Part shown: positions 9,562-24,836 of the stretch, piece by piece
Layout: each line of letters begins with the position of its first letter
Position numbering within the stretch: the first letter of the stretch is position 1
Virus record (IMG/VR): IMGVR_UViG_3300042147_000020
Coordinates: 1 to 64,000 of that record
DNA: 64,000 nt
Strand: one strand, 5' to 3'
Translations under genes and position numbers: made by a program
Notes under the pieces: model-generated
What the model saw: only the letters and a program-made list of their open reading frames with translations
Database searches by the model: none
What the model was told of the DNA's origin: nothing

Positions 9562-9843
9562 TTAAACGTTGTGATACTCTGGGCTCAAAGCCACCCAAGC
9601 ACCATTGCTCCGTGCACAGGACAACTGTTGCTGAACCGCCAAACACTGGTAATGAGTACCAGCGAACAGTGTACCAGTCGCAGTATGCGGACGGACATGC
9701 CAGCGCTTCCAGAACCAACGTCCCGTACGTTCAACTACATACTGGAGGTGGTGCTGACTTGCGCGGTACCCAGGACTTTCTAGAACAGATACCCCAGTCT
9801 TCAGCTCACTACCAACGGCGAGATCGCAGTCGAGCTGACTCAC
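9562..9843 (-). CDS. Hypothetical protein
   Basis: 93 aa, GTGA overlap with the TAXI gene stop. Confidence 0.55.
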   Translation of the reverse strand: MSQLDCDLAVGSELKTGVSVLESPGYRASQHHLQYVVERTGRWFWKRWHVRPHTATGTLFAGTHYQCLAVQQQLSCARSNGAWVALSPEYHNV

Positions 9844-10724
9844 TGACGCACAGCCTTCACGTTAGCGGTGATGGCCTTGGTGATCGCACGCTTGACGTCA
9901 CGAGCTTCCTTGGTGTCCATGCTGGCGTGGTAGGCGTTGTTGTACACCACTTGGGCCGCCATGGCGTAGGTGTCAATCGAGAACATTTTGTTGTCGGTAG
10001 GAATGCCGGAGTCACCTTTGCTGGTCAGAGAGAAAGGAGTGTAAAGAGGGTTCTCGTTACGATCCTTGGCCTTACCGAAAGAGGACTCACCGATCTCACC
10101 GATCCACAGGCTGTCTTTGTAGTCGTCAGTGATGTCGCTACTGATCAGACCCGAACGTCCCACGTACAGAATGCCACCGACTTCCACCCGCACGCCGGAC
10201 TTCATGGTGAAGCCCTGCGAAGCTGCTTCTGCCGCTTCCAGCCAGCTATCGAACTCGACAGTTTTGATGTTGGCGTAATCAGGGTCGACTGCCGCGAAGT
10301 TCTTGACAGTTACTTCGGCACCAGAGCCGGAAACATAACCCACCGCACGGATCAGGTTTTCGTCCTTGATCATGTCGGCGAAGGACTTCACGCCAGTAGC
10401 ACCGTGGAGCCAGAAGATGACCTCGGTGTGGGCATTGGTCACGGTGATGTCACGTGGTAGACCCAAGCTGGACACCGCGTCAGCTTGCATGATCGCCATG
10501 ACGCAATCACCCTCTTTGAGCAGGTGGGCGTTCTCGACCGAACCACCGGTGTTCAGGACTTCGAGTTTGGCGCCGATCTTCTTGGCAATGTCCTTGCCGA
10601 TACCTGTACCCAACGACTCGTACGCGCCGGTAGGACCACCGGTGCAGAAGGTCAGGTCAGCAGGTGCCGCCACTGCTACAACGGATGCCAAGGCGAGAGC
10701 CAGGCCAATGAACAGCTTTTTCAT
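9840..10724 (-). CDS. TAXI-family TRAP transporter solute-binding protein (secreted)
   Basis: Signal peptide MKKLFIGLALALASVVAVA; motifs TGGPTGAY, NTGGSVENxxLL, AIMQAD, GSGA. Start moved to 10724 (GGAG RBS). Confidence 0.8.
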   Translation of the reverse strand: MKKLFIGLALALASVVAVAAPADLTFCTGGPTGAYESLGTGIGKDIAKKIGAKLEVLNTGGSVENAHLLKEGDCVMAIMQADAVSSLGLPRDITVTNAHTEVIFWLHGATGVKSFADMIKDENLIRAVGYVSGSGAEVTVKNFAAVDPDYANIKTVEFDSWLEAAEAASQGFTMKSGVRVEVGGILYVGRSGLISSDITDDYKDSLWIGEIGESSFGKAKDRNENPLYTPFSLTSKGDSGIPTDNKMFSIDTYAMAAQVVYNNAYHASMDTKEARDVKRAITKAITANVKAVRQ

Positions 10725-10753
10725 GTGTTTACTCCAACGGGTTTTGGTTTGCG

Positions 10754-11491
10754 TTATTGTGGGGTGGATACTTTCAACTCGCCATGCCACTGTCCGTTGT
10801 AGAACTGTAGCAAGATGAGCATCATGTGATCCAGTAAAAGGGTTGGCACATGTCCAGTCTTCCACTGAATGCCTTCGAACCACTCGAGTTTGAAAGCGTC
10901 TTCGTAGACCCGGAGTAGTACTGAGTTGACTCGAGTGCGGTCTAAATCACCCTCGAGCAACTTTAGGGTGTAGCCGCCACGGAGGGTCAAGTCCAAGGCG
11001 TGATGTTGGTGATCAATCGAGATGACTTTGTAGGGTTCTGACACCACATCGAAAGTCACCAACGTCTGGATGGTAAACTCTGGGGCTTCACGGCAACCAT
11101 TGAAACCAACACTACGTATACCGAAGCACAGGTCATTCTCAGGTTCCGCTAGCAATCTGTGAACACGATCGCCCATGGGTCCGGTAGGCTTGAAACGACC
11201 AACCAACCGATCGTCCTCTACACTCCCTGAAGCAATCACACCACAGACACGCTCCAAGTGCACTTGTGCAGCACGATGAACCACTTCACCGCAAGTCAGG
11301 TGATCGACAGTGGGTGTACCGAACTCCACATAAATCGGAGCACGAGTGAGCATTTCCTCAAACTTGTAGCCCACCTGCTTCGGATCGTACTTACGACCGC
11401 TGGGGGCGACTTTACTGGGGATCGCCAGAGTGACGTGGTAGTAACCGTCAGCATCGGGCTTGAGGTCTTTCACTGGGTTGTGTCCAATCAT
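10754..11491 (-). CDS. Prohead-protease-like (phiKZ gp175 / T4 gp21 type) paralog lacking the canonical catalytic residues
   Basis: GYYxVxL, SGRxY, YVEFGTP (cf. GExGHP), KPTGPMG, ENxxFGIRS (cf. FSxRS), LVTFDVVSEP. Start at 11491 by ATGA overlap. Confidence 0.6.
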   Translation of the reverse strand: MIGHNPVKDLKPDADGYYHVTLAIPSKVAPSGRKYDPKQVGYKFEEMLTRAPIYVEFGTPTVDHLTCGEVVHRAAQVHLERVCGVIASGSVEDDRLVGRFKPTGPMGDRVHRLLAEPENDLCFGIRSVGFNGCREAPEFTIQTLVTFDVVSEPYKVISIDHQHHALDLTLRGGYTLKLLEGDLDRTRVNSVLLRVYEDAFKLEWFEGIQWKTGHVPTLLLDHMMLILLQFYNGQWHGELKVSTPQ

Positions 11492-11655
11492 ACTGGAACT
11501 CCCCGAGCACGACATTCAGCCTTGTATTCCTCGATCATCGTAAAGAGGTTGTTCTTGTGGCGCAGACCTAAACGTACACAACGTTTGATCTTGGCCTCTT
11601 CTTTCTTAATCGCACGTTCCATCTTGGCGAGCACTTCATCTTGATCGTCTGGCAC
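11488..11655 (-). CDS. Small protein (55 aa), not in the ORF track
   Basis: GTG start with AGGA RBS: MPDDQDEVLAKMERAIKKEEAKIKRCVRLGLRHKNNLFTMIEEYKAECRARGVPV; stop overlaps the next ATG. Confidence 0.65.
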   Translation of the reverse strand: MPDDQDEVLAKMERAIKKEEAKIKRCVRLGLRHKNNLFTMIEEYKAECRARGVPV

Positions 11656-11772: not shown

Positions 11773-13905
11773 TTATGCTGGAAGACTGAACTCAAATGAA
11801 TCAGTCTGACCAGTACCACTTTTGATACCTGCAAAGTAGAACATGCGAGTACCAAGGATACCAGAACCACCGAAGCCACGTGCTGCACCAGCGTTAGCCG
11901 CCAGAGCTTGCCATGTGTTCGAGAATGGATCGTAAACGTTCGACCCACTATACGGAGCACCGCCGTTAACCGACCCCCACAAGGAGATCACACGACCTTT
12001 GAAGGAGTGGAACGTTCGACGACACCCGTAAGCAGCAGGCATGTTAGCCTTCTCAGTCATTACGCCTGTCACAGTATCGTAGCAGAACGTTTTGTTGATG
12101 TAGACGCTGTTGTTACGACCACCGATCAGATAGATCTTAGTGCCAATAGCGGCGACGCCCAGATCGAGTCGAGGAGTTTGTCCAGTGATAGTCAACTCAG
12201 TCCAAGTGTTGTTGAGAGTATCGTATTTGTACTGGTTAAACTTAGTCGGTACTTCAGGAGAAACAGTACTGCTGGTCATCCCACCGAACATGTAGATGTT
12301 CGTACCCACTACACAACCGTCACCGAAGGTCATCGGTCCAGGGAGCGCTGCTTTAGTAGACCACGTACCTAGAGTAAAGTCGTAACACTCGACCAAGGTA
12401 GTAGCCGCACCGCCGTTAGCGGTTAGGCCGCCGCAGACGTACAACTTACTTCCCACTACGGCTGAAGTGTGTCCAGCTCGAGCAGTAGGTAAGGCAGGCA
12501 GATCGACCCACGCAGTACCGTCGAAGCGACGGAACCAAGCTTGTGGTGTACCACTGAAACCACCAATCCAGTACAACTTCCCATCGTAACTAACGACGTC
12601 GTGGTGGAAGCTATATCCAGGTGACGCTGTGGACTTCCAAGTCATCCCGGAGAAGTTGAACAACTCTTCCAGCACTGGCCGCCACCCGTAAGCTACGTTT
12701 GGCGTATCGTTAGGTTCATACCAGACACCAGCGAACCCAGGGTAACCGCGTAGGAGAGTACCTCCCTGCGTACTACCTTCCTTACAGATGATCATCTCAC
12801 CGGACGAGATACCGCCAAGCCAACCCATGTCAGCAGGAGTGTTATACGCCCACGCAGCGCCAGCGCCGGTGTAAGCATTAGTTACCCTCATGAAGTAGTT
12901 GTTGTACTCACCACCAGGCGAATTGGTTGGATCGTTTCCATCACCACCCGTCATCACCCGCACACGGTACGTCAGGCCACCAATTACAACAGTCTTGGTA
13001 CCCATGATCATACCCAAAGCGTTAAGCTGAGCCCATGACAAAGTCATGCGGATGATCTTCTTCGGCATGTAGAAAGTACTACCGTTGTCAACGAACTTCA
13101 ACCACGGAGTAGTGTCGTTAACCAGAGTACCATCAGTCAAACCAACTGCCGCCGCCAAGGCAGAACCGGTAATGAAGTTAGCAGCAAGTATTTCGCCAAT
13201 GAATGGAATTGGTGGCATGGTGGATTTCTTAACCAGCACTGGACGCCATCCGTACCAATTTTGGGGTGTATCGGGGGAGATGTACCAAATACCTTTAACC
13301 TGTGCTGCGGTTTCCTGTCCACCAGAGTCACTTCCTCGAGTGAAGTGACCGAAGGCAGCACCGTCAGAACAAATAGTCCCCACACCTAGTTCAGCCGAAC
13401 CGTCCATGGTTGCAACGCCCAACATTGGACCAGTGTAGTCGCCCCAGTGTTGGGCGTCTCCTGGGAAGGTTGCACGGTCTGTCATGGTGTAGATGTTGTA
13501 CATGTAGCGGTTCCACTCACCGCCAGCGTTAGACGGACCGGCTGACCCAGCCGGATTTATAGCTCCTGACAACAGCCGGACAACGAAGACTTCACCACCA
13601 ATAGTGACTTCTGCGCCGCCGAGCGACAGACCACGTGCATTGAGCTGTTCCCAACTTACGTTGTAGCGGATTGGCTTCTTGGCGATGTACAGTTCAAGGC
13701 CAGTGTCTTCGATGTAATGTAGCCAGCCCCCGTCTCTGTTCATTAGGGTCCCAGCAGTCAATCCTACCGCTGTGGCTAGGGAATCCCCGTAGATGAAGCT
13801 CACAGAAGAGACTACTCCTTTGAAGGGAGTCCCCGCTGGGAAAGCTAGATCGGAGTTGTCAATAGCCACCGCAACTTGAGTCTTAGACAATAGAGTCTCG
13901 ATCAC
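11773..13905 (-). CDS. Virion protein: two tandem 'WRPVL' domains plus a C-terminal Kelch beta-propeller
   Basis: Two ~200-aa repeats each ending YGWRPVL, then about six Kelch repeats (LYWIGG, LYVCGG, IYMFGG, IYLIGG ... YDxxxxxW). Confidence 0.8.
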   Translation of the reverse strand: MIETLLSKTQVAVAIDNSDLAFPAGTPFKGVVSSVSFIYGDSLATAVGLTAGTLMNRDGGWLHYIEDTGLELYIAKKPIRYNVSWEQLNARGLSLGGAEVTIGGEVFVVRLLSGAINPAGSAGPSNAGGEWNRYMYNIYTMTDRATFPGDAQHWGDYTGPMLGVATMDGSAELGVGTICSDGAAFGHFTRGSDSGGQETAAQVKGIWYISPDTPQNWYGWRPVLVKKSTMPPIPFIGEILAANFITGSALAAAVGLTDGTLVNDTTPWLKFVDNGSTFYMPKKIIRMTLSWAQLNALGMIMGTKTVVIGGLTYRVRVMTGGDGNDPTNSPGGEYNNYFMRVTNAYTGAGAAWAYNTPADMGWLGGISSGEMIICKEGSTQGGTLLRGYPGFAGVWYEPNDTPNVAYGWRPVLEELFNFSGMTWKSTASPGYSFHHDVVSYDGKLYWIGGFSGTPQAWFRRFDGTAWVDLPALPTARAGHTSAVVGSKLYVCGGLTANGGAATTLVECYDFTLGTWSTKAALPGPMTFGDGCVVGTNIYMFGGMTSSTVSPEVPTKFNQYKYDTLNNTWTELTITGQTPRLDLGVAAIGTKIYLIGGRNNSVYINKTFCYDTVTGVMTEKANMPAAYGCRRTFHSFKGRVISLWGSVNGGAPYSGSNVYDPFSNTWQALAANAGAARGFGGSGILGTRMFYFAGIKSGTGQTDSFEFSLPA

Positions 13906-13935
13906 GATTCATTCCCCCTAAGAGGAGTTAAGTTA

Positions 13936-14592
13936 TTACGGGGCTGTGAACAACGTAGCTTCGGCTGGAAGTGTCGGGAGTTCCGCTAGGGTCGTAGCAG
14001 CAGTGACGGCATCTTTGAAGTCCCAGATCTTTTGGTAGCCGACTGACACTGCGTAGAAAGCAGCATCCGTCATAGCAATCAGCTCAGCAGCCGTCAGTAT
14101 CACACAGATGTTCTCGTACACGCGGAACGAGAAATCCATCGCACCACCAGCCACCACAACTTCCTTAGCGATAATACGCAGGGAGGTCAAGTTGGAACGG
14201 TCGGCGTTACGGATCTGGACGTGGTACGTGCCCTCGTTGAAGGCGTAAGCGAAGCCGCGCTCGAATTGGGAAATCCGCAGATCTTCAGCCTCGCGCTGGA
14301 GTTCAGCTTTGCGGGTGGTCAACTGGTCGTTGAGTTCGGCTTGACTGTAAGTGCGTTCGATCCAGCTTTGGTACCACTTACCATCGAGTAATTGTGGCGG
14401 GCCCGCGACAACAACGTCATTCTCCGGGATCGGGGTGTCATAAACGGGTTGGTATCCGAGGGCGATCATTTCCTCTACCTCGGGTGTTGCTGTGAAGCTG
14501 GTAGTGGCTTTGAGTTTGTCGCGGATCTGGTCCAAAGTGATTGGATAGTTACCTGTGGCAACTTCGATGAAGCGAGTGTATAAGATTGACAT
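13936..14592 (-). CDS. Tail-fibre-assembly-like protein (DUF4376-like C-terminus)
   Basis: LGYxPV...GKWYQSW N-terminus; QIRNADRSNL...FRVYEN...KDAVTAATTLAEL C-terminus; lies in the fibre locus. Confidence 0.6.
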   Translation of the reverse strand: MSILYTRFIEVATGNYPITLDQIRDKLKATTSFTATPEVEEMIALGYQPVYDTPIPENDVVVAGPPQLLDGKWYQSWIERTYSQAELNDQLTTRKAELQREAEDLRISQFERGFAYAFNEGTYHVQIRNADRSNLTSLRIIAKEVVVAGGAMDFSFRVYENICVILTAAELIAMTDAAFYAVSVGYQKIWDFKDAVTAATTLAELPTLPAEATLFTAP

Positions 14593-14604
14593 GGTCAGAA
14601 TTCC

Positions 14605-15540
14605 TTACATTACAAGTTCGAGAACGGGACGCCAGTAAGTGTAGACCGCGTTATAGTTACCTATCACGTTAGTGGACACCTTGTCAGGGGCAGTAGTACC
14701 ATCACCGCCTCGCAGAATAATGGTACCACCAGCAGTTGTGGTCACATCTTTGGTATATACGTTCAGGTTGATACCGGCTAGAACCAGGTCGTCTAACGCA
14801 GGCACGCCAAAGTTTTGAATGCGACCTTGGAAATTCGGAGCCATGATGTAATCATACTCACCCCCAATTTGGTTTGCGGGCACAGCCGAAGCAGTCAGGG
14901 TACCTACCCGTGTCCCCGGTAAACGTACCACAAAATTGTCAGTACCTTTAGCCATGACGTAATTTTGAGGGATTGTACCGTAGGTACTTTTCGCCGCAGC
15001 ACTCCAAGTGCTGGGGTCGTCGGTTCCATAGACCAATCCCGCTTTGTACAGTTCGGCCCAAGATAGACCCGAACTATAGGCGAAACACACCCCTTGGTCT
15101 GGAACAAAGAGGATCTTACCGTTATAGACCATTTTGATCCAGCAGGTAATTCCTAGTCCAGCGGCGTTGTTGGTAATGAGCGGGTTGTTGATGTATGCAA
15201 CCAATTCACTGGAAGCGAATAGGTCCTCTGGACTCATGCGACCAAAAGTACCGCAACTCCAGTCACCACGTAGTAATTTCTGAGGCCCAGGGCCCGTGTA
15301 AGGCATGTAGGCCAAAGGCATGTTCGAAGACAACGTTTCTTCAGTACCCACTACTGCACTAACTCGGTAGTGGTAGACTTGGTTACGCACAGCGGTGGTG
15401 TCGGTGTAGGTGAAAATACCCGCAGCAACTTCCGCCAACACCGCAGGTAAAGCATCGTCGAGTATCACACTGTCGGCTCGGTAGACCCGGAACTTGTCAA
15501 CAGTGATGTTTCTGTCGATCCAGTTAAGTGTTAAAGACAT
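14605..15540 (-). CDS. Virion protein: FN3-like N-domain plus 'WRPVLEL' domain
   Basis: LxW...VYR...YTDTT...YHYRV, then TGPGPQxLLRGDWxCGxFG...YWRPVLEL. Confidence 0.8.
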   Translation of the reverse strand: MSLTLNWIDRNITVDKFRVYRADSVILDDALPAVLAEVAAGIFTYTDTTAVRNQVYHYRVSAVVGTEETLSSNMPLAYMPYTGPGPQKLLRGDWSCGTFGRMSPEDLFASSELVAYINNPLITNNAAGLGITCWIKMVYNGKILFVPDQGVCFAYSSGLSWAELYKAGLVYGTDDPSTWSAAAKSTYGTIPQNYVMAKGTDNFVVRLPGTRVGTLTASAVPANQIGGEYDYIMAPNFQGRIQNFGVPALDDLVLAGINLNVYTKDVTTTAGGTIILRGGDGTTAPDKVSTNVIGNYNAVYTYWRPVLELVM

Positions 15541-15550
15541 GGTTAGACCC

Positions 15551-16477
15551 TTATGTCAGAATAAGTTCGAGAACGGGGCGCCAGTTAGCATAACCGCTTG
15601 CATAATCTGCATCAGTGGGAACGTTGTAATCGAACCCTGTACTGTTGCTCACAGATATTGCGAGCTTACCCGAGGAAAAATGCTGGGTTGCAGAACCAAC
15701 GCCTCCTGGTGGAACCTCGTCGTTCCATTTATCTTGGGGTGATGTAGAATATAAGGTTAGTCCTTGTCGCCCCATCAAGCTCCCCCATTCGGATGCGTCT
15801 GTGGCGATAACACCTGGTGCATACACGTTGGTTGCCGCATCAGTGACCGACGGTGCCCGCACCAAAAAGTTATACGTGGCGTAAGGAACGACCACTTTTT
15901 GGTTAGTCAAAGTGATACCAGCAATGGTTGTTAGTACGAAGGGGGCTGAACCAGTGTCGTCCGTTCCGTATATTAATCCATTGTTATAAATGTCCCTCCA
16001 GCGGCAGGTCCCTGCGGCAAACACATTGTTAGGAATAAAAAGAACCTTACCCTTACGGATAAACTTATACCACCCAGTCACGGTGCCGTCGGCTGGAGTG
16101 GAGTTTCCGAGATTTGGGTTATTAAGGAGAGCCCTTAACTGAGAGATGCTGAGGAAGTTGGCTGTGGGAACCAACCCAAAATATCCGCAGTCCCAATTTC
16201 CTCGTAAGAGCGTCTGGGGACCTGGACCTGTGTCAGGGTAATGTCCCATGATCAGTACTGGACTTAGTAGTTCCTGTCCTGCCCGGACGTGACCCACCGC
16301 GTAGTAGTACGTAGTGTTGCGTACGGCAGTTGCGTCACTGTAAGACGTGGCTGATCCAGCAGCGGTTGCCAAAGCGGCAGGAAGGTTATTTACGTCGAGT
16401 GGTGTAGTAGACCGATAGATGTTAATGCTTTCTGCGAGCGCCGCGTTAGCAGCACCCCATGTCAAGGTAACAGACAT
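15551..16477 (-). CDS. Virion protein: FN3-like N-domain plus 'WRPVLEL' domain
   Basis: Paralog of 14605-15540 (TGPGPQTLLRGNWDCGYFG...NWRPVLEL). Confidence 0.8.
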   Translation of the reverse strand: MSVTLTWGAANAALAESINIYRSTTPLDVNNLPAALATAAGSATSYSDATAVRNTTYYYAVGHVRAGQELLSPVLIMGHYPDTGPGPQTLLRGNWDCGYFGLVPTANFLSISQLRALLNNPNLGNSTPADGTVTGWYKFIRKGKVLFIPNNVFAAGTCRWRDIYNNGLIYGTDDTGSAPFVLTTIAGITLTNQKVVVPYATYNFLVRAPSVTDAATNVYAPGVIATDASEWGSLMGRQGLTLYSTSPQDKWNDEVPPGGVGSATQHFSSGKLAISVSNSTGFDYNVPTDADYASGYANWRPVLELILT

Positions 16478-16487
16478 AACTCACTCC

Positions 16488-17450
16488 TTATACCGCAGCC
16501 GGTTCGATGAGTTCCAACACGGGCCACCAGCATGAGATAGATTGGGTTATGGTGATAGCCCCGATGTTTCTTCGAGTAAGGCCGTCGCGGGTACCAGTGA
16601 CGTTAGAACCACGAACCAACGACTGGGTTGCCGCACCCGAAGTAACCTTCTCTTGTGTCAGAATACCGTACGCCATAGACGCCGCGCTATATCCCATGGT
16701 CGTCAAGGTATTGTTTGCTTGGTTAGCCATGCGTTGGACGGTAGGTACCCATACTGAGATAGGGTACATGAGATCATCGTACTCACAAGTAAAGGTTTCA
16801 ACCGGCTCTGCTACGTTACCGGTTGGTGGAAAGACGCCGTAGTCATCGTTATAACCGCGCATTAAGCGAACGCGGTAGGTATCGGCGCCAATAGTTACCT
16901 GTGCGTTCTGGTTAACGTTGGCACCGGCGTTGTACGGACCATTGTCGTTGGAGCCGAATACCAGCCCAGCGTTGTACAGTGCCGTCCAACCAACCCCGGA
17001 AACAGGTAGTTGTTCGGGCACGTAGATCACTTTGCCGTTACGAGCGAACTTGTGCCATTTGGGAGACACGTTCTGCACCGTACCTGAAAGGAAGTTCACC
17101 GCTGTACGCAGTGCGTTGATGTTAATGAAGGACGCCGATGCGATACTACCGAAGTATCCGTAGTTGTAGTCACCGGCTTTCAAGGTGTTAGGACCAGCAC
17201 CACGACGAGGAACAGTTACGATCTGATAGTTTGGTGATACCGTCCGGTCTGTCGCCGAAATGGTCTCGAATACGTAGTAGTACGTGGTACCACGCAACAC
17301 CGTGGAGTCAGTGTAAGTAGTTTCACCTGCCGTTAGAGAAACCAACAAACCAGTCAGGTTAGCTCGGTCAATTGCCGAAGTACCACGGTAGATGTTTACC
17401 GTGATGGGAGTGGCCCCATTGGGGTTTGTCCAAGTCAATTTGTTATACAT
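16488..17450 (-). CDS. Virion protein: FN3-like N-domain plus 'WWPVLEL' domain
   Basis: Paralog (GAGPNTLKAGDYNYGYFG...WHKFARNGK...WWPVLEL). Confidence 0.8.
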   Translation of the reverse strand: MYNKLTWTNPNGATPITVNIYRGTSAIDRANLTGLLVSLTAGETTYTDSTVLRGTTYYYVFETISATDRTVSPNYQIVTVPRRGAGPNTLKAGDYNYGYFGSIASASFININALRTAVNFLSGTVQNVSPKWHKFARNGKVIYVPEQLPVSGVGWTALYNAGLVFGSNDNGPYNAGANVNQNAQVTIGADTYRVRLMRGYNDDYGVFPPTGNVAEPVETFTCEYDDLMYPISVWVPTVQRMANQANNTLTTMGYSAASMAYGILTQEKVTSGAATQSLVRGSNVTGTRDGLTRRNIGAITITQSISCWWPVLELIEPAAV

Positions 17451-17459
17451 GAAAATTCC

Positions 17460-18503
17460 TTACGCGACGTTCGCGCCACTAACAGTGAAAGGGTTCAAGT
17501 CTGCTAAGCTGTACACCAAGTTAGCTGGGTCACTTGCCAATTGAGTACCGATCGCGCTAATTGTAAAAGCGTTTAAGTCAGGTGCTGCACTTGATGTGAC
17601 GTTAACTGGGTTTAGCGCGCAACCTGGGAAGGTAGCTCCAGTGACCACAGGTTGTTTGGTGGGCCACAGAGTAATCACGTTGACTGGGTTAAACAAGGCT
17701 TCGTTAAACCCAGAACCTAGTTGGGCTTGGCGTGAGTCTAGAATCGAGGGTGCTTGAAGCCCCGTCGAAGTTCCGATGACTGTGTACGGATCTAGTAGCG
17801 TTTCATCTGGGATCAATTCCAGTACTGGATACCAATTTGAGTTCGGTGAAGCCTTACTGTAACTCCATTTTGGGGTAAGACCCGTTGCATCGCCCCTAGC
17901 CCAAAATAATGCTATATTAGACGAGCTGGTCTCCTGCACCGACATGTTTAAATTGCTACCCACGTAGCTCAGTGCGTTACTAACCCATTTATCGGATGGT
18001 GTGTTAGCACCCACTAGGACTCGCCCAAACAACTGGTCGAATTCATTGTTAGCCGCTACCACCGAGGCTGGATCAGAACCCATACCAGTCGGCAACCGTG
18101 GGAGTAGATACCAGTTACGAGTGCCGTCGAATTTCTGAATAGGGTTCCACTGATCGACCCCAGCACCTACTGGGTACAACCCATTACCCTTAACGCCGTA
18201 CACTAACCCAGAGTTATATAGGTCGTTCCACACAATGGCACTGAGGGCCATTTGTCTGGAAATGTAAATCACTTTGTTATTGCGGAAGAATTTAAACCAC
18301 TGGGCCCCTGTCCAAGAGTTGAGGGTGCCCGTAGGAATATTGAACTTTAAAACCAAGTCTTTTCCGTAGAACAGTTCAGTTCCAGACACCTCTCCGAAGT
18401 AACCCAGCGTGCTGTTACCGAACTGTAAAGTTTTGGTTCCAGGGCCTGAGTTGGGGTAAAGGTTCGAACCACTTGGAGATTTACCTAACATCATTTCTAA
18501 CAT
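17460..18503 (-). CDS. Virion protein: 'WYPVLEL' domain plus C-terminal NPVNV repeats
   Basis: Start moved to MLEMML at 18503 (GGAGG RBS); SGPGTKTLQFG...GYFGEV...WYPVLEL. Confidence 0.8.
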   Translation of the reverse strand: MLEMMLGKSPSGSNLYPNSGPGTKTLQFGNSTLGYFGEVSGTELFYGKDLVLKFNIPTGTLNSWTGAQWFKFFRNNKVIYISRQMALSAIVWNDLYNSGLVYGVKGNGLYPVGAGVDQWNPIQKFDGTRNWYLLPRLPTGMGSDPASVVAANNEFDQLFGRVLVGANTPSDKWVSNALSYVGSNLNMSVQETSSSNIALFWARGDATGLTPKWSYSKASPNSNWYPVLELIPDETLLDPYTVIGTSTGLQAPSILDSRQAQLGSGFNEALFNPVNVITLWPTKQPVVTGATFPGCALNPVNVTSSAAPDLNAFTISAIGTQLASDPANLVYSLADLNPFTVSGANVA

Positions 18504-18553
18504 TTTGTCACCTCCGATGGGGGGACACGTGCTACCAAAAGATAGACTGAGAC

Positions 18554-18594
18554 ACCACCACACAAGGGGTCAGTAACTCCCCTTGTGTGGTGGT
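18554..18594. repeat. Perfect 16-bp inverted repeat (hairpin without a U-tract in the operon direction)
   Basis: ACCACCACACAAGGGG-TCAGTAACT-CCCCTTGTGTGGTGGT. Confidence 0.8.
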
Positions 18595-18600
18595 TATGCG

Positions 18601-21600
18601 TTAAACAGAAGCACCGACGGTACCAATCCACTTCGTACCATCCCACAACAAAGTGACAATGGTGGTGGAAGCACCGAGTACAGGAGCAGCACCACCGTTC
18701 CACGTGATGGTTGGCCACGTGATCGTTGCAGCACCTTGGATGACCAACACCACGGACATGGTACGAGTTGCACCCGGCACCGTACCGGCTTTGAACGAGA
18801 TGGTAGTCGCAGTGGAGTTAGCCACCGACCACACGTTACCGATGGCCAAGTCGAGGACACCAGCCGCAGCAGCGTTCATCTTCAGGTCGTAGACGTCCAA
18901 GGACACCCAAGCACCGTTCTTACGCAGGTACTGTTTACCGTCAGAGGCAGCGTCCGCGAGGGAAGCCGGAACGATCACCCACGCTGCACCTTTACGCATG
19001 TAGCCGTTGGCATCGTTCGGAGCATCTTGCAGAACAGAGACCCACGCTGCACCTTTACGACCGTAAGCCAAGGCGTCGTTAGGTGCTTCAGGGAGACCGG
19101 CAGGAACAGTAACTTCCGCCCATGCTCCATTCTTACGAGCGTATTGTTTACCGTCGTTAGGAGCTTCTGCTACTGCGAAGACCACCTCAGTCCAAGCACC
19201 GTTCTTACGAACGTATTGCTTGCCATCACTCAGAGCTTCAGCCACAGGGACTGCTACCCAAGCGCCGTTCTTCCGGGTGTAGAAACCACCATCAGACGGA
19301 GCTTCGGAGATACCAGCCGCAGGGATCACGACTTCAAGCCAAGAACCGTTCTTACGGATGTACTGCTTACCGTCGAGCGGTGCTTCGATGACAGGGATCT
19401 CGAACCAGACACCATCTTCACGACCATACAGCTTGCCGTCTTGTGGTGCTTCCAGTACGTCGACCTTAACCCACGCACCGTCTTTACGAGCGTAGTACTG
19501 ACCATCCGACAGGGCTTCCAGTACAGTGATCTCAACCCACTGATCGTATTGACGAGCGTAGACCTTACCATCGTCAGACGGACTGTAGACGTTACCACCA
19601 CCCATGTAACCGAGTGACACCCACAGAACGTCCGTAGACTTTCTGAAGTACTGCATGGTACCGGTGTTCAGGTAGTAGTCGGCACGACGACCGTCCAGTG
19701 GACCCGGATCACGACCCAGGGAAATCCAAGCAGTGCCTGGTTCACCTTTGTCGCCAGTGAAACCGATCGGACCTTTCGGACCAACGACCGTATCACCCTT
19801 ATCACCTTTGTCGCCCTTAGGACCTTGGATAGACCCCAAGTCATCATAGGCTGCACCAGTCCAACCCCAGAAGTTCAGCCCGATCATGTAACCCTGACCG
19901 AGAGTACCAGTACCCGGCAGGTCAGCAGTGCTAGCGAGTTTCCCGAGGATTGTGATACCCGGACCCATTGGACCGTCTTCACCTTGTGGTCCTACGATGT
20001 TGCCGAGGAATACCCAAGCGGTACCATCGTAGGAGTAAACGTCGCCATCACCGACGATGTAGCCGTCGCCTTGAACCATTCCAGTAACGGCGTTCAGAGC
20101 AGCGAGATCGACGAGGTTACCCTTCGGTTTGAAGTTGTTACCTTGATCACCTTTAGGACCTTCCGGACCAATCAAGCGAGCCAAGAAGTCGTTGATGCTG
20201 GTGATAGACGGATCGACGATCTGTGCCATCTCCAGAGCAGACTTACCAGTAGGACCAGTCAGGTCGCCGAGGTTAATCCAACCTGCACCGTTGTACACCC
20301 ATAAGTGACCAGTGACCATGTAGGTCCAGCCGATCTGCGGGTCAGCAACACCGTTGAGTAGGGACGGGTTAGACAGGATGCCTTTAGCGACCATGGAGTT
20401 ACCAGTGTCACCTTTGTCGCCTTTCACCCCGTCTTCACCTTGAGGACCTTGAATGACACCGAGGTCAAGCCACTCGTCACCATCCCAACCCCAGAAGTGA
20501 CCTTGGATCAGGTAGCCATCACCCAACTCACCCGTAGCAGGCAAACCGGCAGTGGTATCGAACTTACCTTTCAGTGTCAGACCGGCACCGAGGTCGCCCT
20601 TATCACCTTTGTCACCTTTGATGCTGTCACCTTGGTCGCCCTTAGGGCCAACGTAAGTACCACAGTCAACCCACGCACCACTGATGGTGACGTAGAGGTT
20701 CTGACCAGCGATCCAAGCAGCGAAAGCAGGAGCAACGGTAGGGTCTGGCAAGTTCTCGAAGGCGGCTACTTTACCAGCGATAACCAAGTTCTGACCCGGA
20801 TCACCTTTAGGACCGGTAACCGAATCACCTTTGTCCCCTTTAGGACCGGCCACAGCAATCAACCAATCTTCGACTGTCCCGGTGTAACCCGCTTCTACAG
20901 CCAGTGCGTAGTTCGACTTACCTTTGATACTCTCCAGCCATTCAGCCAGAGTACCCACATAGCCGTCTTCTTCAACGGCCAGTTGGTAAGCAGAGAGACC
21001 TTGAACAACACCGAGGTCTTCCCATTCAGTACCCGACCACACCCACAAGTGACCTTGGATGTAGTAACCGTCACCACCGGCGTTACCGGAAGGAGGGAGG
21101 TCGCCCGGATCTTCAAACTTACCCAACACCGAGATGGCGTTGGCAGGATCGCCTTTAACACCTTGAGGACCGATGTCGCCCTCGTCACCCTTAGGACCAA
21201 CCAAGCTTTCCAAGTACTGGAGCAACGTACCACTGAAACCGGTAGAGATCGCCAGTTCGTAGTTGTTCTTACCCACCAAGGAAGCCAACCATTGGGCTTC
21301 AGTGCCACTATAACCACGGGAAGCAGCCAGCTCGTAAGCCGACTTACCAGTAGGGCCGACTTGACCAACCTTGGCCCAGCCCACTGTATCCCAAACATAC
21401 ATGGACTCGTCGATGATCCAAGAGTCGCCGGAGACGTTATCCCCGTTAGGCAACTCGGAGATGTCTGACAGAGAACCCATGATCCGTAGACCGATACCAT
21501 CATGACCTTTGAGGGACTCGATCCACTCCTCGAACGTACCTGGGAACCCGCCTTCGATTACCGCAACGTCATACGCTGAGTAACCCTGAATACCGCGGAC

Positions 21601-21864
21601 CACACCAACGTTACGCCATTCGCCTTCTACCAACGTGTGGAGATCGTAGCCGATGATCCAAGAATCACCAGGCTGAGAGTCACCCACGTTCGGAAGGTTG
21701 ACCACGTCCGCCAAGGTACCCAAGATGCGAATCGAGTCGCCGTCTCTGCCCGCAGAGACGATCTCTGACAATGGGGCTTTCTTGCTGAACCCATTTTGAA
21801 CTACTTCGATTAACTCAGCGCCCGTGATGGGGCCCGCTGGGTCCATTTCTGAGATTTTACCCAT
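18601..21864 (-). CDS. Collagen-like fibre protein with ten tandem foldon-like repeats
   Basis: Gly-X-Y blocks (GPKGDKGD), SAYELA...WLxSLxG repeats, LPxxGxxGDxYxI...VWxGxxW repeats, and EAPxDGKQYxRKNGAW x10. Confidence 0.9.
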   Translation of the reverse strand: MGKISEMDPAGPITGAELIEVVQNGFSKKAPLSEIVSAGRDGDSIRILGTLADVVNLPNVGDSQPGDSWIIGYDLHTLVEGEWRNVGVVRGIQGYSAYDVAVIEGGFPGTFEEWIESLKGHDGIGLRIMGSLSDISELPNGDNVSGDSWIIDESMYVWDTVGWAKVGQVGPTGKSAYELAASRGYSGTEAQWLASLVGKNNYELAISTGFSGTLLQYLESLVGPKGDEGDIGPQGVKGDPANAISVLGKFEDPGDLPPSGNAGGDGYYIQGHLWVWSGTEWEDLGVVQGLSAYQLAVEEDGYVGTLAEWLESIKGKSNYALAVEAGYTGTVEDWLIAVAGPKGDKGDSVTGPKGDPGQNLVIAGKVAAFENLPDPTVAPAFAAWIAGQNLYVTISGAWVDCGTYVGPKGDQGDSIKGDKGDKGDLGAGLTLKGKFDTTAGLPATGELGDGYLIQGHFWGWDGDEWLDLGVIQGPQGEDGVKGDKGDTGNSMVAKGILSNPSLLNGVADPQIGWTYMVTGHLWVYNGAGWINLGDLTGPTGKSALEMAQIVDPSITSINDFLARLIGPEGPKGDQGNNFKPKGNLVDLAALNAVTGMVQGDGYIVGDGDVYSYDGTAWVFLGNIVGPQGEDGPMGPGITILGKLASTADLPGTGTLGQGYMIGLNFWGWTGAAYDDLGSIQGPKGDKGDKGDTVVGPKGPIGFTGDKGEPGTAWISLGRDPGPLDGRRADYYLNTGTMQYFRKSTDVLWVSLGYMGGGNVYSPSDDGKVYARQYDQWVEITVLEALSDGQYYARKDGAWVKVDVLEAPQDGKLYGREDGVWFEIPVIEAPLDGKQYIRKNGSWLEVVIPAAGISEAPSDGGFYTRKNGAWVAVPVAEALSDGKQYVRKNGAWTEVVFAVAEAPNDGKQYARKNGAWAEVTVPAGLPEAPNDALAYGRKGAAWVSVLQDAPNDANGYMRKGAAWVIVPASLADAASDGKQYLRKNGAWVSLDVYDLKMNAAAAGVLDLAIGNVWSVANSTATTISFKAGTVPGATRTMSVVLVIQGAATITWPTITWNGGAAPVLGASTTIVTLLWDGTKWIGTVGASV

Positions 21865-21898: not shown

Positions 21899-22450
21899 TT
21901 AAGCTGCGTCCTCAAGACGAATGGTACCGTCTTCCTGCAACCTCACACTACCGTCTTCTTCCAGACGCGCATTACCTTCGACTGGACTAACAAGAGTAAT
22001 CGGTAAAGAACCAGTATAAAGCAACGAGCTAGCTTTAGCTCTTAGCTGAATTGTTACTTCATTAGTACCCGGTGCCGGTGTCGGTAATTCGGTGACAGTA
22101 AACTCAACGTCACTTGCCACCAACTGTAATTGTTGAACCACATAGCTCAACGTTAGGGCCAAATCAGCCGCTGGAGGACAGGAGAACCCTGAACCCAGTA
22201 CGAGGAGTGCGTCGCGGTGATAGTGGACTTCTACTGACCCGGTGAGTACCTGACCGGCCTTGGCAGTTATGACAACTTTCGTGTTATACCACGCGTCAGT
22301 TGGTGAATCCCACGCGACTGGCGCCGAGTGAGTTACCTGAGAAGCTAGGAGGGGTTTATTTGGACTGGTTCCATTGATGGCCGCGAAAAAGTTCTCTTCG
22401 GCGGTTTTCACCGGATCAATCTGTAATCGGTTAGTCACTACGCCTGACAT
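21899..22450 (-). CDS. Virion structural protein (paralog family, 1 of 5)
   Basis: NTKVxIT...GSVEVHYHR...AKASSLLYTG; C-terminal RLxEDG repeats. Confidence 0.7.
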   Translation of the reverse strand: MSGVVTNRLQIDPVKTAEENFFAAINGTSPNKPLLASQVTHSAPVAWDSPTDAWYNTKVVITAKAGQVLTGSVEVHYHRDALLVLGSGFSCPPAADLALTLSYVVQQLQLVASDVEFTVTELPTPAPGTNEVTIQLRAKASSLLYTGSLPITLVSPVEGNARLEEDGSVRLQEDGTIRLEDAA

Positions 22451-22514
22451 GATAATCATCCTCTAGATAGAGCACGGTCTCTGGATTAACGACCCGCTAT
22501 TAATAGACACTCGA

Positions 22515-22560: not shown

Positions 22561-23142
22561 TTAAGCTTCTGGATCGAAGCCGTCGAGGTCAGTAACCGGG
22601 GTAGCGATAGCCAAGCTCAGCGGTACGATAGTCAGGCCGACGAGTTCTGGGTTTACGATGATCTGACTGAGCTGAACCGAACTAGGTTCGATTATTAAAG
22701 TCAGACTACCCCGATACGCCAAAGAGCCAACAGAAGCTTTCAGCTCTACCACGTCGGCATCGACAAAATCGGTGGGGAGTGCTGTGGTTAGATCAATGTC
22801 CGTCAGCTCCAAAGCTGATCTGTAGTAGGCATTAAATCCGTCCAACAGGGTGGCGTGGGTAGGGGGAACTTCAACCACGATTCCTTGTGGGTCAGCCAGA
22901 GTTTCGAACTCCGCCAAATCAATCCGATCGTACGCGAGTTCTACTTCACCTACGAGACGACGGTTAGGTTTGGGTGTGATGATGATTTTGGTATTGGCAG
23001 GGTTTTCTGCCCCAGGTTGTTGTTCTGGTGTGAGGACTGACGGCGCGCTAAATTGGACGTCGTCAAGCGTCAAGTCCAACGAGTCTGTCTCGTTGATCAG
23101 AGCCAGGAGCTGCTCTGCGGATGTCATTCCAATGTGATACAT
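22561..23142 (-). CDS. Virion structural protein (paralog 2 of 5)
   Basis: LLALINE...NTKIIIT...YDR...SLAYRG; ends ATPVTDLDGFDPEA. Confidence 0.75.
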   Translation of the reverse strand: MYHIGMTSAEQLLALINETDSLDLTLDDVQFSAPSVLTPEQQPGAENPANTKIIITPKPNRRLVGEVELAYDRIDLAEFETLADPQGIVVEVPPTHATLLDGFNAYYRSALELTDIDLTTALPTDFVDADVVELKASVGSLAYRGSLTLIIEPSSVQLSQIIVNPELVGLTIVPLSLAIATPVTDLDGFDPEA

Positions 23143-23235: not shown

Positions 23236-23679
23236 TTACACCAAACGCAGGGCTACAGTAATTGAACCACCTACGTACAGCAAGTTACCGACGATAGGGG
23301 TTACAGTCACAGTGCCGTCAGTTGCGTCGACTGGGATAGTGAGCGCTGTGAACTCAACAGCCGATTCGATGATTCGCAGAGCAGCCGCTACTTTGGTTTT
23401 GACGTCAGCTTCAGTGTCAGTTGCCGTAACGTCTACAGCCGCAGGGGTAGGGATCTCTTGGGAGGCCAGCGTAGCACGGTCGTAGGTGTACGTCAGGCTA
23501 CCGGTGTAACCATGGCCAACAATACCCGTCAGCGTCACCTCAGTGTTGTCTGTGGTCTCGCCAGTAGGTTCCACAGCAGGACCAGCCGTCACACGACCTT
23601 CAGCCAGCAACGTACCGTTCTTCTCGTTTACCAACGCCAACACGTTTGTCAGAGGACTCACGCTCAAGTTGATTTTCAT
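23236..23679 (-). CDS. Virion structural protein (paralog 3 of 5)
   Basis: NVLALVNEKN...NTEVTLT...YTYDR...LLYVG. Confidence 0.75.
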   Translation of the reverse strand: MKINLSVSPLTNVLALVNEKNGTLLAEGRVTAGPAVEPTGETTDNTEVTLTGIVGHGYTGSLTYTYDRATLASQEIPTPAAVDVTATDTEADVKTKVAAALRIIESAVEFTALTIPVDATDGTVTVTPIVGNLLYVGGSITVALRLV

Positions 23680-23703
23680 ACATAATTCCTCTACTAGAAG
23701 ATG

Positions 23704-23736
23704 GCATAAAAGCCGGGAGTGACCCCGGCTTTTATG
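23704..23736. terminator. Terminator hairpin (possibly bidirectional)
   Basis: CATAAAAGCCGGG-AGTGAC-CCCGGCTTTTATG. Confidence 0.75.
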
Positions 23737-23749
23737 TTGTAACTAAACC

Positions 23750-24256
23750 TTAGGCTTCAGCTTCGAAGCCGTCCAGGTCAGTTACTGGGGTAGCGCTGGA
23801 CAGGCTGACATCAGCCAAGCTCAGCGGTACGACGCGAACGCCGGTGTACAGCAGGCTGGTAGCCTTGGCGGTCAGGGTGACCGAACCGTCGGTGTCCATA
23901 TCAACAGGAGCGCTGAAAGCGCTGTAGTCGAATTCGCCAGCGACCAGACCCAGAGCAGCCAGAACCTTAACAACGGACTCAGCCTGATCGTCGTCAACCA
24001 GGGTATCAACCTTGGCTGGGGCGGTGGACGCAACAGCGTCGGTAGCGATGCTACGACGGGTGTAAGCGTAGGTCTGAGTGCCGGTGTAGTCGGCGATTGC
24101 AGTCAGGGTAACTTCGGTGTTACGACCGCCAGTGCCAGCAACAACGCTTGGGTTACCAACGGTAACTTGTGCTTCGGTGATCACTTGACCAACGTTGACA
24201 CCGTTGATCAGGTCCAGAATGTTCTGGATGGCGCTTTTAGCAGCATTAACTTTCAT
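23750..24256 (-). CDS. Virion structural protein (paralog 4 of 5)
   Basis: NILDLING...NTEVTLT...YAYTR...SLLYTG; ends ATPVTDLDGFEAEA. Confidence 0.75.
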   Translation of the reverse strand: MKVNAAKSAIQNILDLINGVNVGQVITEAQVTVGNPSVVAGTGGRNTEVTLTAIADYTGTQTYAYTRRSIATDAVASTAPAKVDTLVDDDQAESVVKVLAALGLVAGEFDYSAFSAPVDMDTDGSVTLTAKATSLLYTGVRVVPLSLADVSLSSATPVTDLDGFEAEA

Positions 24257-24389
24257 GGCGTACTCCAGCTATCCATAAGTAGACACAATGTCTACTCATA
24301 GTATTGTTAAGTAAAAGAATACATAAGTCGGCAATTCACTTATGGTTATAGGTGCACCCTTCTCATTGGCCGTTTATAGGAGCCTCAAC

Positions 24390-24836
24390 GTGATTGTTGA
24401 TCATACCCTAACCCCGCTACAAAACATCATTGCCCTGATCAACGAAACCAACGATACGGCTTTCACCGCCGACGATTTCGTTCTTTCGGGTCTGGTGCAA
24501 ACCGACCTCACCGGTGACGTAACGGTGAAGAACTCCACCATTGTTGTGACATGTACTCTGAACAACGAGTTCTACGGCAACCAGACTTTGACTTTCCGTC
24601 GCCTCTACGTTCAAGAGATCGTCAAGTCCGACGACTACGTTATTCAGTCCGGTGACACTCTGGACTCGATCCGCCTGATGATCGCTGATCGTTACTTGAT
24701 GATCCCAGGTGAACTGGAGTGGGACAAGCCTGAGCTGGACGTACCAGTTGGTGAAACCTCTCCGTATGTACTGCGTGCCAAAGACGGTAGCCTGTGCTAC
24801 GTGGGTGAACTGACAATTACCTTCATCCAAAACTAA
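24390..24836 (+). CDS. Virion structural protein (paralog 5 of 5, inverted)
   Basis: NIIALINETN...NSTIVVT...TFRR...AKDGSLCYVG; start moved to GTG 24390 (AGGAG RBS). Confidence 0.75.
   Translation: MIVDHTLTPLQNIIALINETNDTAFTADDFVLSGLVQTDLTGDVTVKNSTIVVTCTLNNEFYGNQTLTFRRLYVQEIVKSDDYVIQSGDTLDSIRLMIADRYLMIPGELEWDKPELDVPVGETSPYVLRAKDGSLCYVGELTITFIQN

Follow-up and report, generated by a model that had tools for sequence, protein, structure and literature searches.

A tandem array of C-type-lectin-fold domains in a phiKZ-like jumbo phage: candidate virion adhesins of paralog family B, apparently diversified without a retroelement

No gene family of the SPN3US-like jumbo phages is larger than paralog family B, which accounts for 21 of the 55 proteins assigned to the head of Salmonella phage SPN3US. 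Its SPN3US members are gp83, gp138-154, gp161 and gp237, all left without an assigned function (PMC5694885); published work on the family gives it neither fold nor function (PMC5694885, PMC10052503), and a broad survey of jumbo phages reports no FGS-type C-type-lectin-fold domains (PMC7824862). Here we analyze five genes located between positions 11773 and 18563 of a window of 64,000 nucleotides (nt), namely positions 1 to 64,000 of the IMG/VR virus record IMGVR_UViG_3300042147_000020. By sequence comparison they are new members of this already known virion-protein family, and together they carry six copies of one domain of 200-230 amino acids (aa) whose predicted structure has the C-type-lectin (CLec) fold. 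They probably encode exposed, ligand-binding adhesins of the virion, the lectin-fold branch of family B, diversified without a diversity-generating retroelement (DGR).

The source record is 238,799 bp long, with an estimated completeness of 86%, and the window is its first 64 kb; the phage is uncultured and its sequence is present in two rhizosphere metagenome runs. Judged by protein matches it belongs with the phiKZ-like jumbo phages (Chimalliviridae). Of the described phages those nearest to it, each with protein identities below 40%, are Noxifer (Pseudomonas), SA002 and SPN3US (Salmonella), and PhiEaH1 and Asesino (Erwinia). At the nucleotide level, megablast of the array region against 50,697 phage records gave no match. 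In IMG/VR no relative is closer than 82%. The original prediction, which was made from the sequence by eye, took the region to be AT-rich; this does not hold, because the guanine-plus-cytosine content of the array is 51.07% against 51.26% genome-wide, at the 44th percentile among windows of equal size.

The five open reading frames (ORFs) are tightly packed on the minus strand. P0001 (11773-13905, 710 aa) consists of two tandem CLec-fold domains, delimited by a hidden Markov model (HMM) at aa 27-229 (nt 13219-13827) and aa 235-417 (nt 12655-13203), followed by a Kelch beta-propeller at about aa 428-694 (nt 11824-12624; Pfam E 3e-24). Three genes encode an FN3 domain and then a CLec-fold domain: P0002 (14605-15540, 311 aa; FN3 at 15289-15540, CLec-fold at 14608-15288), P0003 (15551-16477, 308 aa; FN3 at 16235-16477, CLec-fold at 15554-16234) and P0004 (16488-17450, 320 aa; FN3 at 17202-17450, CLec-fold at 16491-17201). 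P0005 (ORF 17460-18563, 367 aa) is without FN3, and its CLec-fold domain (17802-18446) is followed by a C-terminal tail (17463-17801) with about five short (D)LN(P/A)(F/V)-like repeats such as DLNPF and DLNAF; its ORF extends to a GTG at 18563, the ATG at 18503 being the probable start. The partner modules that had been noticed by eye are all found: FN3 stands before three copies of the domain, the Kelch propeller after two and the short-repeat tail after one. In a public protein collection the gene at 15551-16477 is listed only as a 207-aa product (P0007), and its orthologs all back the 308-aa ORF. The starts of two neighbouring array genes share a 65-nt similarity (77%; 15536-15597 and 14588-14649) that spans the ribosome-binding region and the first codons and is the sole notable genome repeat of the region.

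That the five genes carry six diverged copies of one domain ending in W-x-PVL is supported by alignment, BLASTP, phage orthologous group profiles and HMM. In the six-way alignment L, W, W, G, G, R and E are invariant along with the terminal W-x-P-V-L. Pairwise BLASTP connects most pairs of copies at E 1e-9 to 1e-28, and two pairs, those of P1a (a P0001 copy) with P2 and with P3, are joined solely via the remaining copies. The profiles PHROG 1062 and 3589, which do not derive from these sequences, match each of the five proteins (E 1e-36 to 1e-113), and an HMM of the six copies finds no seventh one in the whole 238.8-kb genome. The longer scaffold motif of the original prediction is upheld only in part, its GK element being absent from both copies of P0001. 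The least conserved part is the stretch of about 60 aa ahead of the terminal strand, among paralogs, as the original prediction had it, and also among orthologs.

The same domain HMM matches nine consecutive genes of SPN3US, gp145-153, at E 1e-18 to 1e-46. Six of their products are FN3+CLec proteins, and three (gp145, gp148 and gp151) have another N-terminal module, which is the N-part of DUF7941 (PF25613), by Pfam in gp145 and gp148 and by an HMM of our own in gp151. In phiKZ only gp83 has the domain, in one copy; a Kelch propeller follows it, as in P0001. On this sequence evidence, the five genes are the lectin-fold branch of paralog family B, which is specific to the phiKZ-like nucleus-forming jumbo phages (Chimalliviridae) and is linked genetically with DUF7941 filament-module genes and a collagen-like fibre gene.

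The fold was approached by structure prediction. Using an alignment of 61 homologs from a word search, the AlphaFold2 model of the whole of P0003 has two domains, with a predicted local distance difference test (pLDDT) of 90.4 and a predicted template modelling score (pTM) of 0.89; residues 82-308 alone, modelled with 64 domain sequences, reach a pLDDT of 92.6. In fold searches with the whole model, including Foldseek against the PDB, only FN3 was returned. With the lone domain Foldseek found nothing in the PDB at E <= 1e-3, and so no solved chain that contains the domain. An exhaustive VIA-align search with the lone domain gave a list made almost wholly of CLec-fold proteins, among them PvdO (5.5), CEL-I (5.4), Treponema TvpA (5.2) and Mtd (4.8), as well as CarF, DNGR-1, the mannose-receptor CRD-4, Bdellovibrio Bd2740, EgtB and the invasin InvE. 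The predicted domain is alpha/beta, with paired N- and C-terminal strands, two helices and a long-loop region, and it aligns to known members of the fold. Its fixed core is composed of the GYFG strand, the W-KF hairpin, the W..LY..G helix, the VRL hairpin, a Glu and the closing W-x-PVLEL strand, and its second half is strongly variable, most of all in the hairpins right before the last strand. In the ESM Atlas a shape search returned viral clusters at template modelling (TM) scores of 0.77-0.83 and then Bacillota and phage DUF6273 proteins at 0.58-0.60, and a feature search gave DUF6273 at 0.83, scores that serve as leads only.

At the level of sequence, hmmscan of 64 aligned domains against Pfam gave no match at E <= 1, and thus none to the CLec families Lectin_C, FGE-sulfatase, DUF1566, DUF6273 or Intimin_C. 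Pfam scans of the five whole proteins assigned the domain to no family either, and searching the PDB sequences with a profile turned up nothing beyond a chance match (E 0.24). Since there is no sequence-level link to any CLec family, the claim is limited to the fold: according to the models, the domain has the CLec fold and is not a member of a known CLec sequence family. The resemblance to CLec-fold modules first noticed by eye is in this way upheld through AlphaFold2 and VIA-align, with Mtd among the neighbours, even if Foldseek itself gave nothing. In the literature searched, a CLec-fold assignment for paralog family B appears to be absent; three-term searches link no C-type lectin to these proteins.

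A CLec fold whose final strand is immediately preceded by a variable segment, the arrangement of Mtd and TvpA, is what one would see if these genes were targets of a DGR, the segment being a variable repeat that a reverse transcriptase rewrites from a template. No reverse transcriptase (PF00078) was found in the 238.8-kb genome (86% complete) or in nine relatives carrying the family, which include three 100%-complete IMG/VR records and four isolate genomes; control genomes gave PF00078 matches. No template-like repeat was found anywhere in the 238.8 kb either: in a blastn search of 11773-18563 against the whole genome (word size 7) the longest non-self match is the 65-nt gene-start similarity already described. 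The absence of both elements, remarked upon by eye, is so confirmed over the 238.8 kb, and for the reverse transcriptase in the nine relatives too.

A strain in X2, a run of a second rhizosphere study, bears on this question; its contigs are of low depth and the details are provisional. The strain is about 98% identical over 12570-18563, with 112 differences in all, and of 40 that are listed 28 are synonymous changes and 27 affect third codon positions. P0005 has 16 differences packed into 267 nt (aa 183-271, covering the CLec-fold domain's second half and the linker) and only one in the 546 nt upstream. In P0004 the segment 16531-17167, most of the CLec-fold domain, finds no match of at least 80% except for short pieces; the joints lie at 16530/16707 and 16911/17010, where depth is low, and one contig resumes precisely at the CWWPVLEL codons. 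A word search with P0004 residues 215-320 found nothing of the divergent block, and neither did an exact 26-nt anchor in JGI metagenome contigs. The DUF4376 gene inside the array forms a second hot spot, outside the lectin-fold domains: its segment 14022-14329 is 13% divergent (41 of 308 nt), with flanks at 1-3%.

An unmatched block that stops just before CWWPVLEL in so similar a strain would suit a DGR. Against it speak the missing reverse transcriptase, in several complete genomes among others, the missing template, the spread of variation over several blocks with indels included, and the mostly synonymous, third-position nature of the P0005 cluster and of the listed X2 differences as a whole. 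The X2 substitution spectrum shows no adenine bias; this is not counted against a DGR, because two variable repeats are compared and the template adenines are not revealed, and the adenine rule needs a template repeat, of which there is none here. We regard DGR targeting as very unlikely, close to negligible. The X2 pattern is in keeping with recombination, in which divergent tracts are brought in locally, rather than with targeted mutagenesis.

Where the diversity may come from is indicated by the comparison with relatives. In a maximum-likelihood tree of 31 domain copies from five phages, each copy of our array pairs with its own ortholog in a 228-kb relative with bootstrap values of 99-100%, and therefore the paralogs are older than the split of these phages. 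SPN3US shows two expansions of its own lineage. The two copies of P0001 are sister branches, which points to an internal tandem duplication as the origin of its double domain. Distances between ortholog pairs range from 0.22 (P0004) and 0.43 (P0002) up to 1.37 (P0003) substitutions per site, P0003 being the fastest-evolving copy. Across 23 orthologs, identity to P0003 stays at 0.7-0.83 in FN3 but is 0.15-0.35 in the stretch ahead of the terminal strand, with 0.15-0.17 over the 30 residues preceding the W-x-PVL strand, so that the segment reported to be variable is not conserved among orthologs. Nonsynonymous divergence (dN) against the 228-kb relative comes to 0.06-0.09 for each of the three FN3 domains and spans 0.04-0.69 for the CLec halves; the P0003 values are 0.09 (FN3) and 0.51-0.69 (CLec part). 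Set against their conserved FN3 anchors, the lectin-fold halves diverge faster by a factor of up to ten. Because synonymous divergence (dS) is saturated (at least 1.3 or undefined), dN alone is reported and positive selection cannot be claimed. Judging from these alignments and trees, the source of the diversity is old paralogy, lineage-specific duplication and fast divergence together with local recombination; paralog expansion, put forward by the original prediction as a possible source, is borne out by the old paralogs and lineage-specific duplications in the tree, and fast divergence is added to it by the dN values.

FN3, Kelch and CLec modules are typical extracellular binding and adhesion modules. 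Each array protein is composed of a conserved attachment part (FN3, Kelch or repeat tail) and a CLec-fold domain of 200-230 aa; the CLec-fold modules would be exposed and probably glycan-binding, located on the virion outside the contractile tail proper in association with head, neck or filaments, and their effect would be a reversible, multi-specific attachment to host or environmental surfaces. On this reading the repertoire goes back to old duplications and to expansion within lineages, along with a rapidly diverging binding half and recombination at a local scale, with no retroelement involved. We favour this adhesin role because of the folds, the analogy with Legionella Lcl and with the tentaclins and Hoc, the link to DUF7941 filaments and the lack of protease processing; for all members, it is from these points that we infer external exposure, binding and the kind of ligand.

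What is known of the location comes from the homologs. In replicate proteomics of tail-tube-amber heads of SPN3US, gp145-153 have normalised head to wild-type ratios of peptide-spectrum matches of 1.06-1.67, the major capsid protein being at 1.39 and sheath, tube, tape measure and baseplate below 0.07 (PMC10052503 Table S2), and gp145-153 are not cleaved by the prohead protease (PMC10052503 Table S6). "Head" in the SPN3US work covers capsid surface, interior and neck, and co-sedimenting filaments are possible too. The phiKZ record labels gp83 a "structural head protein".

These data bear on a second explanation, according to which the proteins are classical tail or baseplate receptor-binding proteins, or the tips of baseplate-anchored DUF7941 filaments. 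The array adjoins a gene annotated as tail fibre, and the variable C-terminal half is as in receptor-binding proteins. Moreover, the Goslar preprint (10.64898/2026.04.21.720040), which deals with the filament-forming DUF7941 proteins, fits phiKZ gp126-gp127 (DUF7941) into peripheral-baseplate density and puts forward a "fibre cloud" for host recognition, with its anchor at the peripheral baseplate. However, SPN3US gp145-153 and the DUF7941 paralogs are at full abundance in tailless particles, in which tail and baseplate proteins are below 7%, and phiKZ gp83, gp145 and gp146 are all noted as head proteins. A tail or baseplate position thus seems unlikely, and the term "receptor-binding module" of the original prediction finds no support if a tail fibre was meant.

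The same proteomics would agree with a third explanation, in which the products are internal head proteins that are packaged with the DNA and ejected into the host, and an arms race is fought through their variable face, which binds host or defence factors. Tailless SPN3US heads are purified together with the homologs, abundant family B members have been tentatively tagged "head ejection?" (PMC5694885), and the phiKZ capsid exterior shows no resolved member. These proteins nevertheless have neither a prohead-protease site nor a propeptide, in contrast to gp47, gp53 and gp54, ejection proteins that are processed, an argument that is limited by the uncleaved virion RNA polymerase (vRNAP) subunits, which are head proteins too. 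The folds are those of extracellular adhesion, the partner DUF7941 proteins form external filaments, and the array is syntenic with a fibre gene. An internal, ejected role is in our judgement quite improbable.

Several points weigh against exposed adhesins and temper the preference for them. The features of canonical Ca2+-dependent C-type lectins are missing, as Ca2+/sugar motifs, disulfides and conserved Cys are all absent; isolated EPN or WND motifs appear in three of the six copies, and their positions fail to line up. Gp83 goes unmentioned in the phiKZ capsid structure and in the 2026 whole-virion atlas and no member is placed in the cryo-EM maps of either, by which an internal position is possible. 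The virion evidence comes from homologs in SPN3US and phiKZ only, the phage studied here being uncultured. Lastly, the presence of DUF7941 and family B proteins in tailless SPN3US heads conflicts with the anchoring of DUF7941 filaments at the peripheral baseplate that the Goslar preprint proposes.

The gene directly upstream of the array (18601-21864, minus strand) encodes a collagen-like fibre protein of 1087 aa with many foldon-like repeats (Pfam Fibritin_C E 1e-23; PHROG 3904), homologous to Noxifer gp138 and phiKZ gp145/gp146. Its homologs are annotated as tail fibre, yet the phiKZ record calls gp145/gp146 "structural head protein", and a phiKZ transposon screen shows zero insertions in these two genes. 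Beyond it lie five small paralogs of the DUF7941 N-module, four on the minus strand (21899-22459, 22561-23142, 23239-23742, 23750-24256) and one on the plus strand (24342-24836), with matches to PF25613 at E 2e-8 to 7e-27; a full-length DUF7941 gene is located at 186 kb of the genome. Two of the paralog tails end in TDLDGF and one in EDGxxRL repeats. The DLNPF and DLNAF repeats of P0005 resemble the TDLDGF tails next door and the NGELDGF tails of SPN3US gp145, gp148, gp151 and gp160, and by this likeness the P0005 tail may dock onto DUF7941 modules; a complex prediction of the tail (aa 276-367) with the N-module of 23750-24256 scored 0.01, which speaks neither for nor against docking.

The order of fibre gene, DUF4376 gene, CLec+tail gene and FN3+CLec genes recurs in Noxifer, PhiEaH1 and the 228-kb relative, a complete metagenomic phage of 228.6 kb. 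The DUF4376 gene (13936-14592, minus strand, 218 aa; Pfam PF14301 E 7e-10; PHROG 4998 E 9e-51) lies within the array in our phage and between fibre gene and array in the relatives. In these three relatives a gene of the P0005-type architecture (CLec+tail) comes first in the array, and the 228.6-kb phage has eight domain copies and a stand-alone Kelch gene. On the other side of the array, a minus-strand gene at 10754-11515 encodes a diverged second prohead protease of Peptidase_S80 type (PF20034 E 2e-12); the strong copy is at 123930-124553 of the genome (E 4e-77), and the pair matches the "cryptic protease paralog" of SPN3US. Adjoining this protease paralog, the gene at 9840-10883 (minus strand) combines a signal-peptide-like N-terminus with an NMT1_3 (TAXI/solute-binding-like) segment (E 9e-8), an odd cargo for a phage.

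The CLec-fold assignment leads to a testable surface-adhesin hypothesis for family B, connects the family to the newly described DUF7941 filaments and exposes the conflict between SPN3US head proteomics and the Goslar baseplate model; the case is also an example of strong variation carried by the CLec scaffold with no retroelement involved. We can go further only tentatively, with more doubt than belief: the chimalliviruses might bear a head-borne or near-head "lectin array" of CLec-fold adhesins anchored by FN3, Kelch or DUF7941 in the manner of Hoc or the tentaclins, which would gain DGR-like hairpin diversity purely through paralog expansion and cassette-like recombination between related phages, and which would set the sticking site before the tail engages. 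If true, this would assign a function to the paralog family, some 20 genes strong in SPN3US, that is the largest one without an explanation in these phages.

Several described systems can be set beside this locus. The Lcl adhesin of Legionella has a collagen-like stalk and a CLec-like head that binds glycosaminoglycans (PMC11162425); its C-terminal domain (DUF1566/PF07603, PDB 8q4e) shares 13% identity with ours, with no profile match between the two, and the phage domain exceeds it by about 100 aa and has additional hairpins and a helix. Mtd (1yu0) and TvpA (2y3c) have in common with our domain the CLec fold and variable residues just before the C-terminal strand. Tentaclins are DGR-targeted phage proteins with C-lec (DUF6273) and Ig/FN3 domains and have been compared with T4 Hoc (PMC10743442). 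Like the array proteins, they are phage virion proteins that combine Ig/FN3 with a CLec-fold domain bearing hypervariable hairpins, and DUF6273 is the nearest named Atlas family by shape and by features, as a lead only, with no hmmscan match at E <= 1; tentaclins have the CLec domain at the N-terminus and the Ig anchor at the C-terminus and are diversified by a DGR, whereas in our phage the order is reversed and no DGR was found. The Goslar DUF7941 filament proteins gp22/gp23 belong to the same type of locus and to the same SPN3US paralog family, and the DUF7941 N-module is fused to a CLec-fold domain in SPN3US gp145, gp148 and gp151. The two domains are separate, though: a kinship of the CLec-fold domain with DUF7941 was tried and rejected (hhalign against SPN3US DUF7941 proteins, probability 0.14%), and none of the five array proteins matches PF25613 at E <= 0.1. 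The closest counterparts are SPN3US gp145-153, studied by the Thomas/Weintraub group (PMC5694885, PMC10052503), and phiKZ gp83. Our phage differs from them in having six domain copies in five genes, against nine genes in SPN3US, two tandem copies in its Kelch protein and array proteins without a DUF7941 module; it shares with SPN3US a tandem-array locus beside DUF7941 genes and, across the family, the architectures FN3+CLec, DUF7941-N+CLec and CLec+Kelch.

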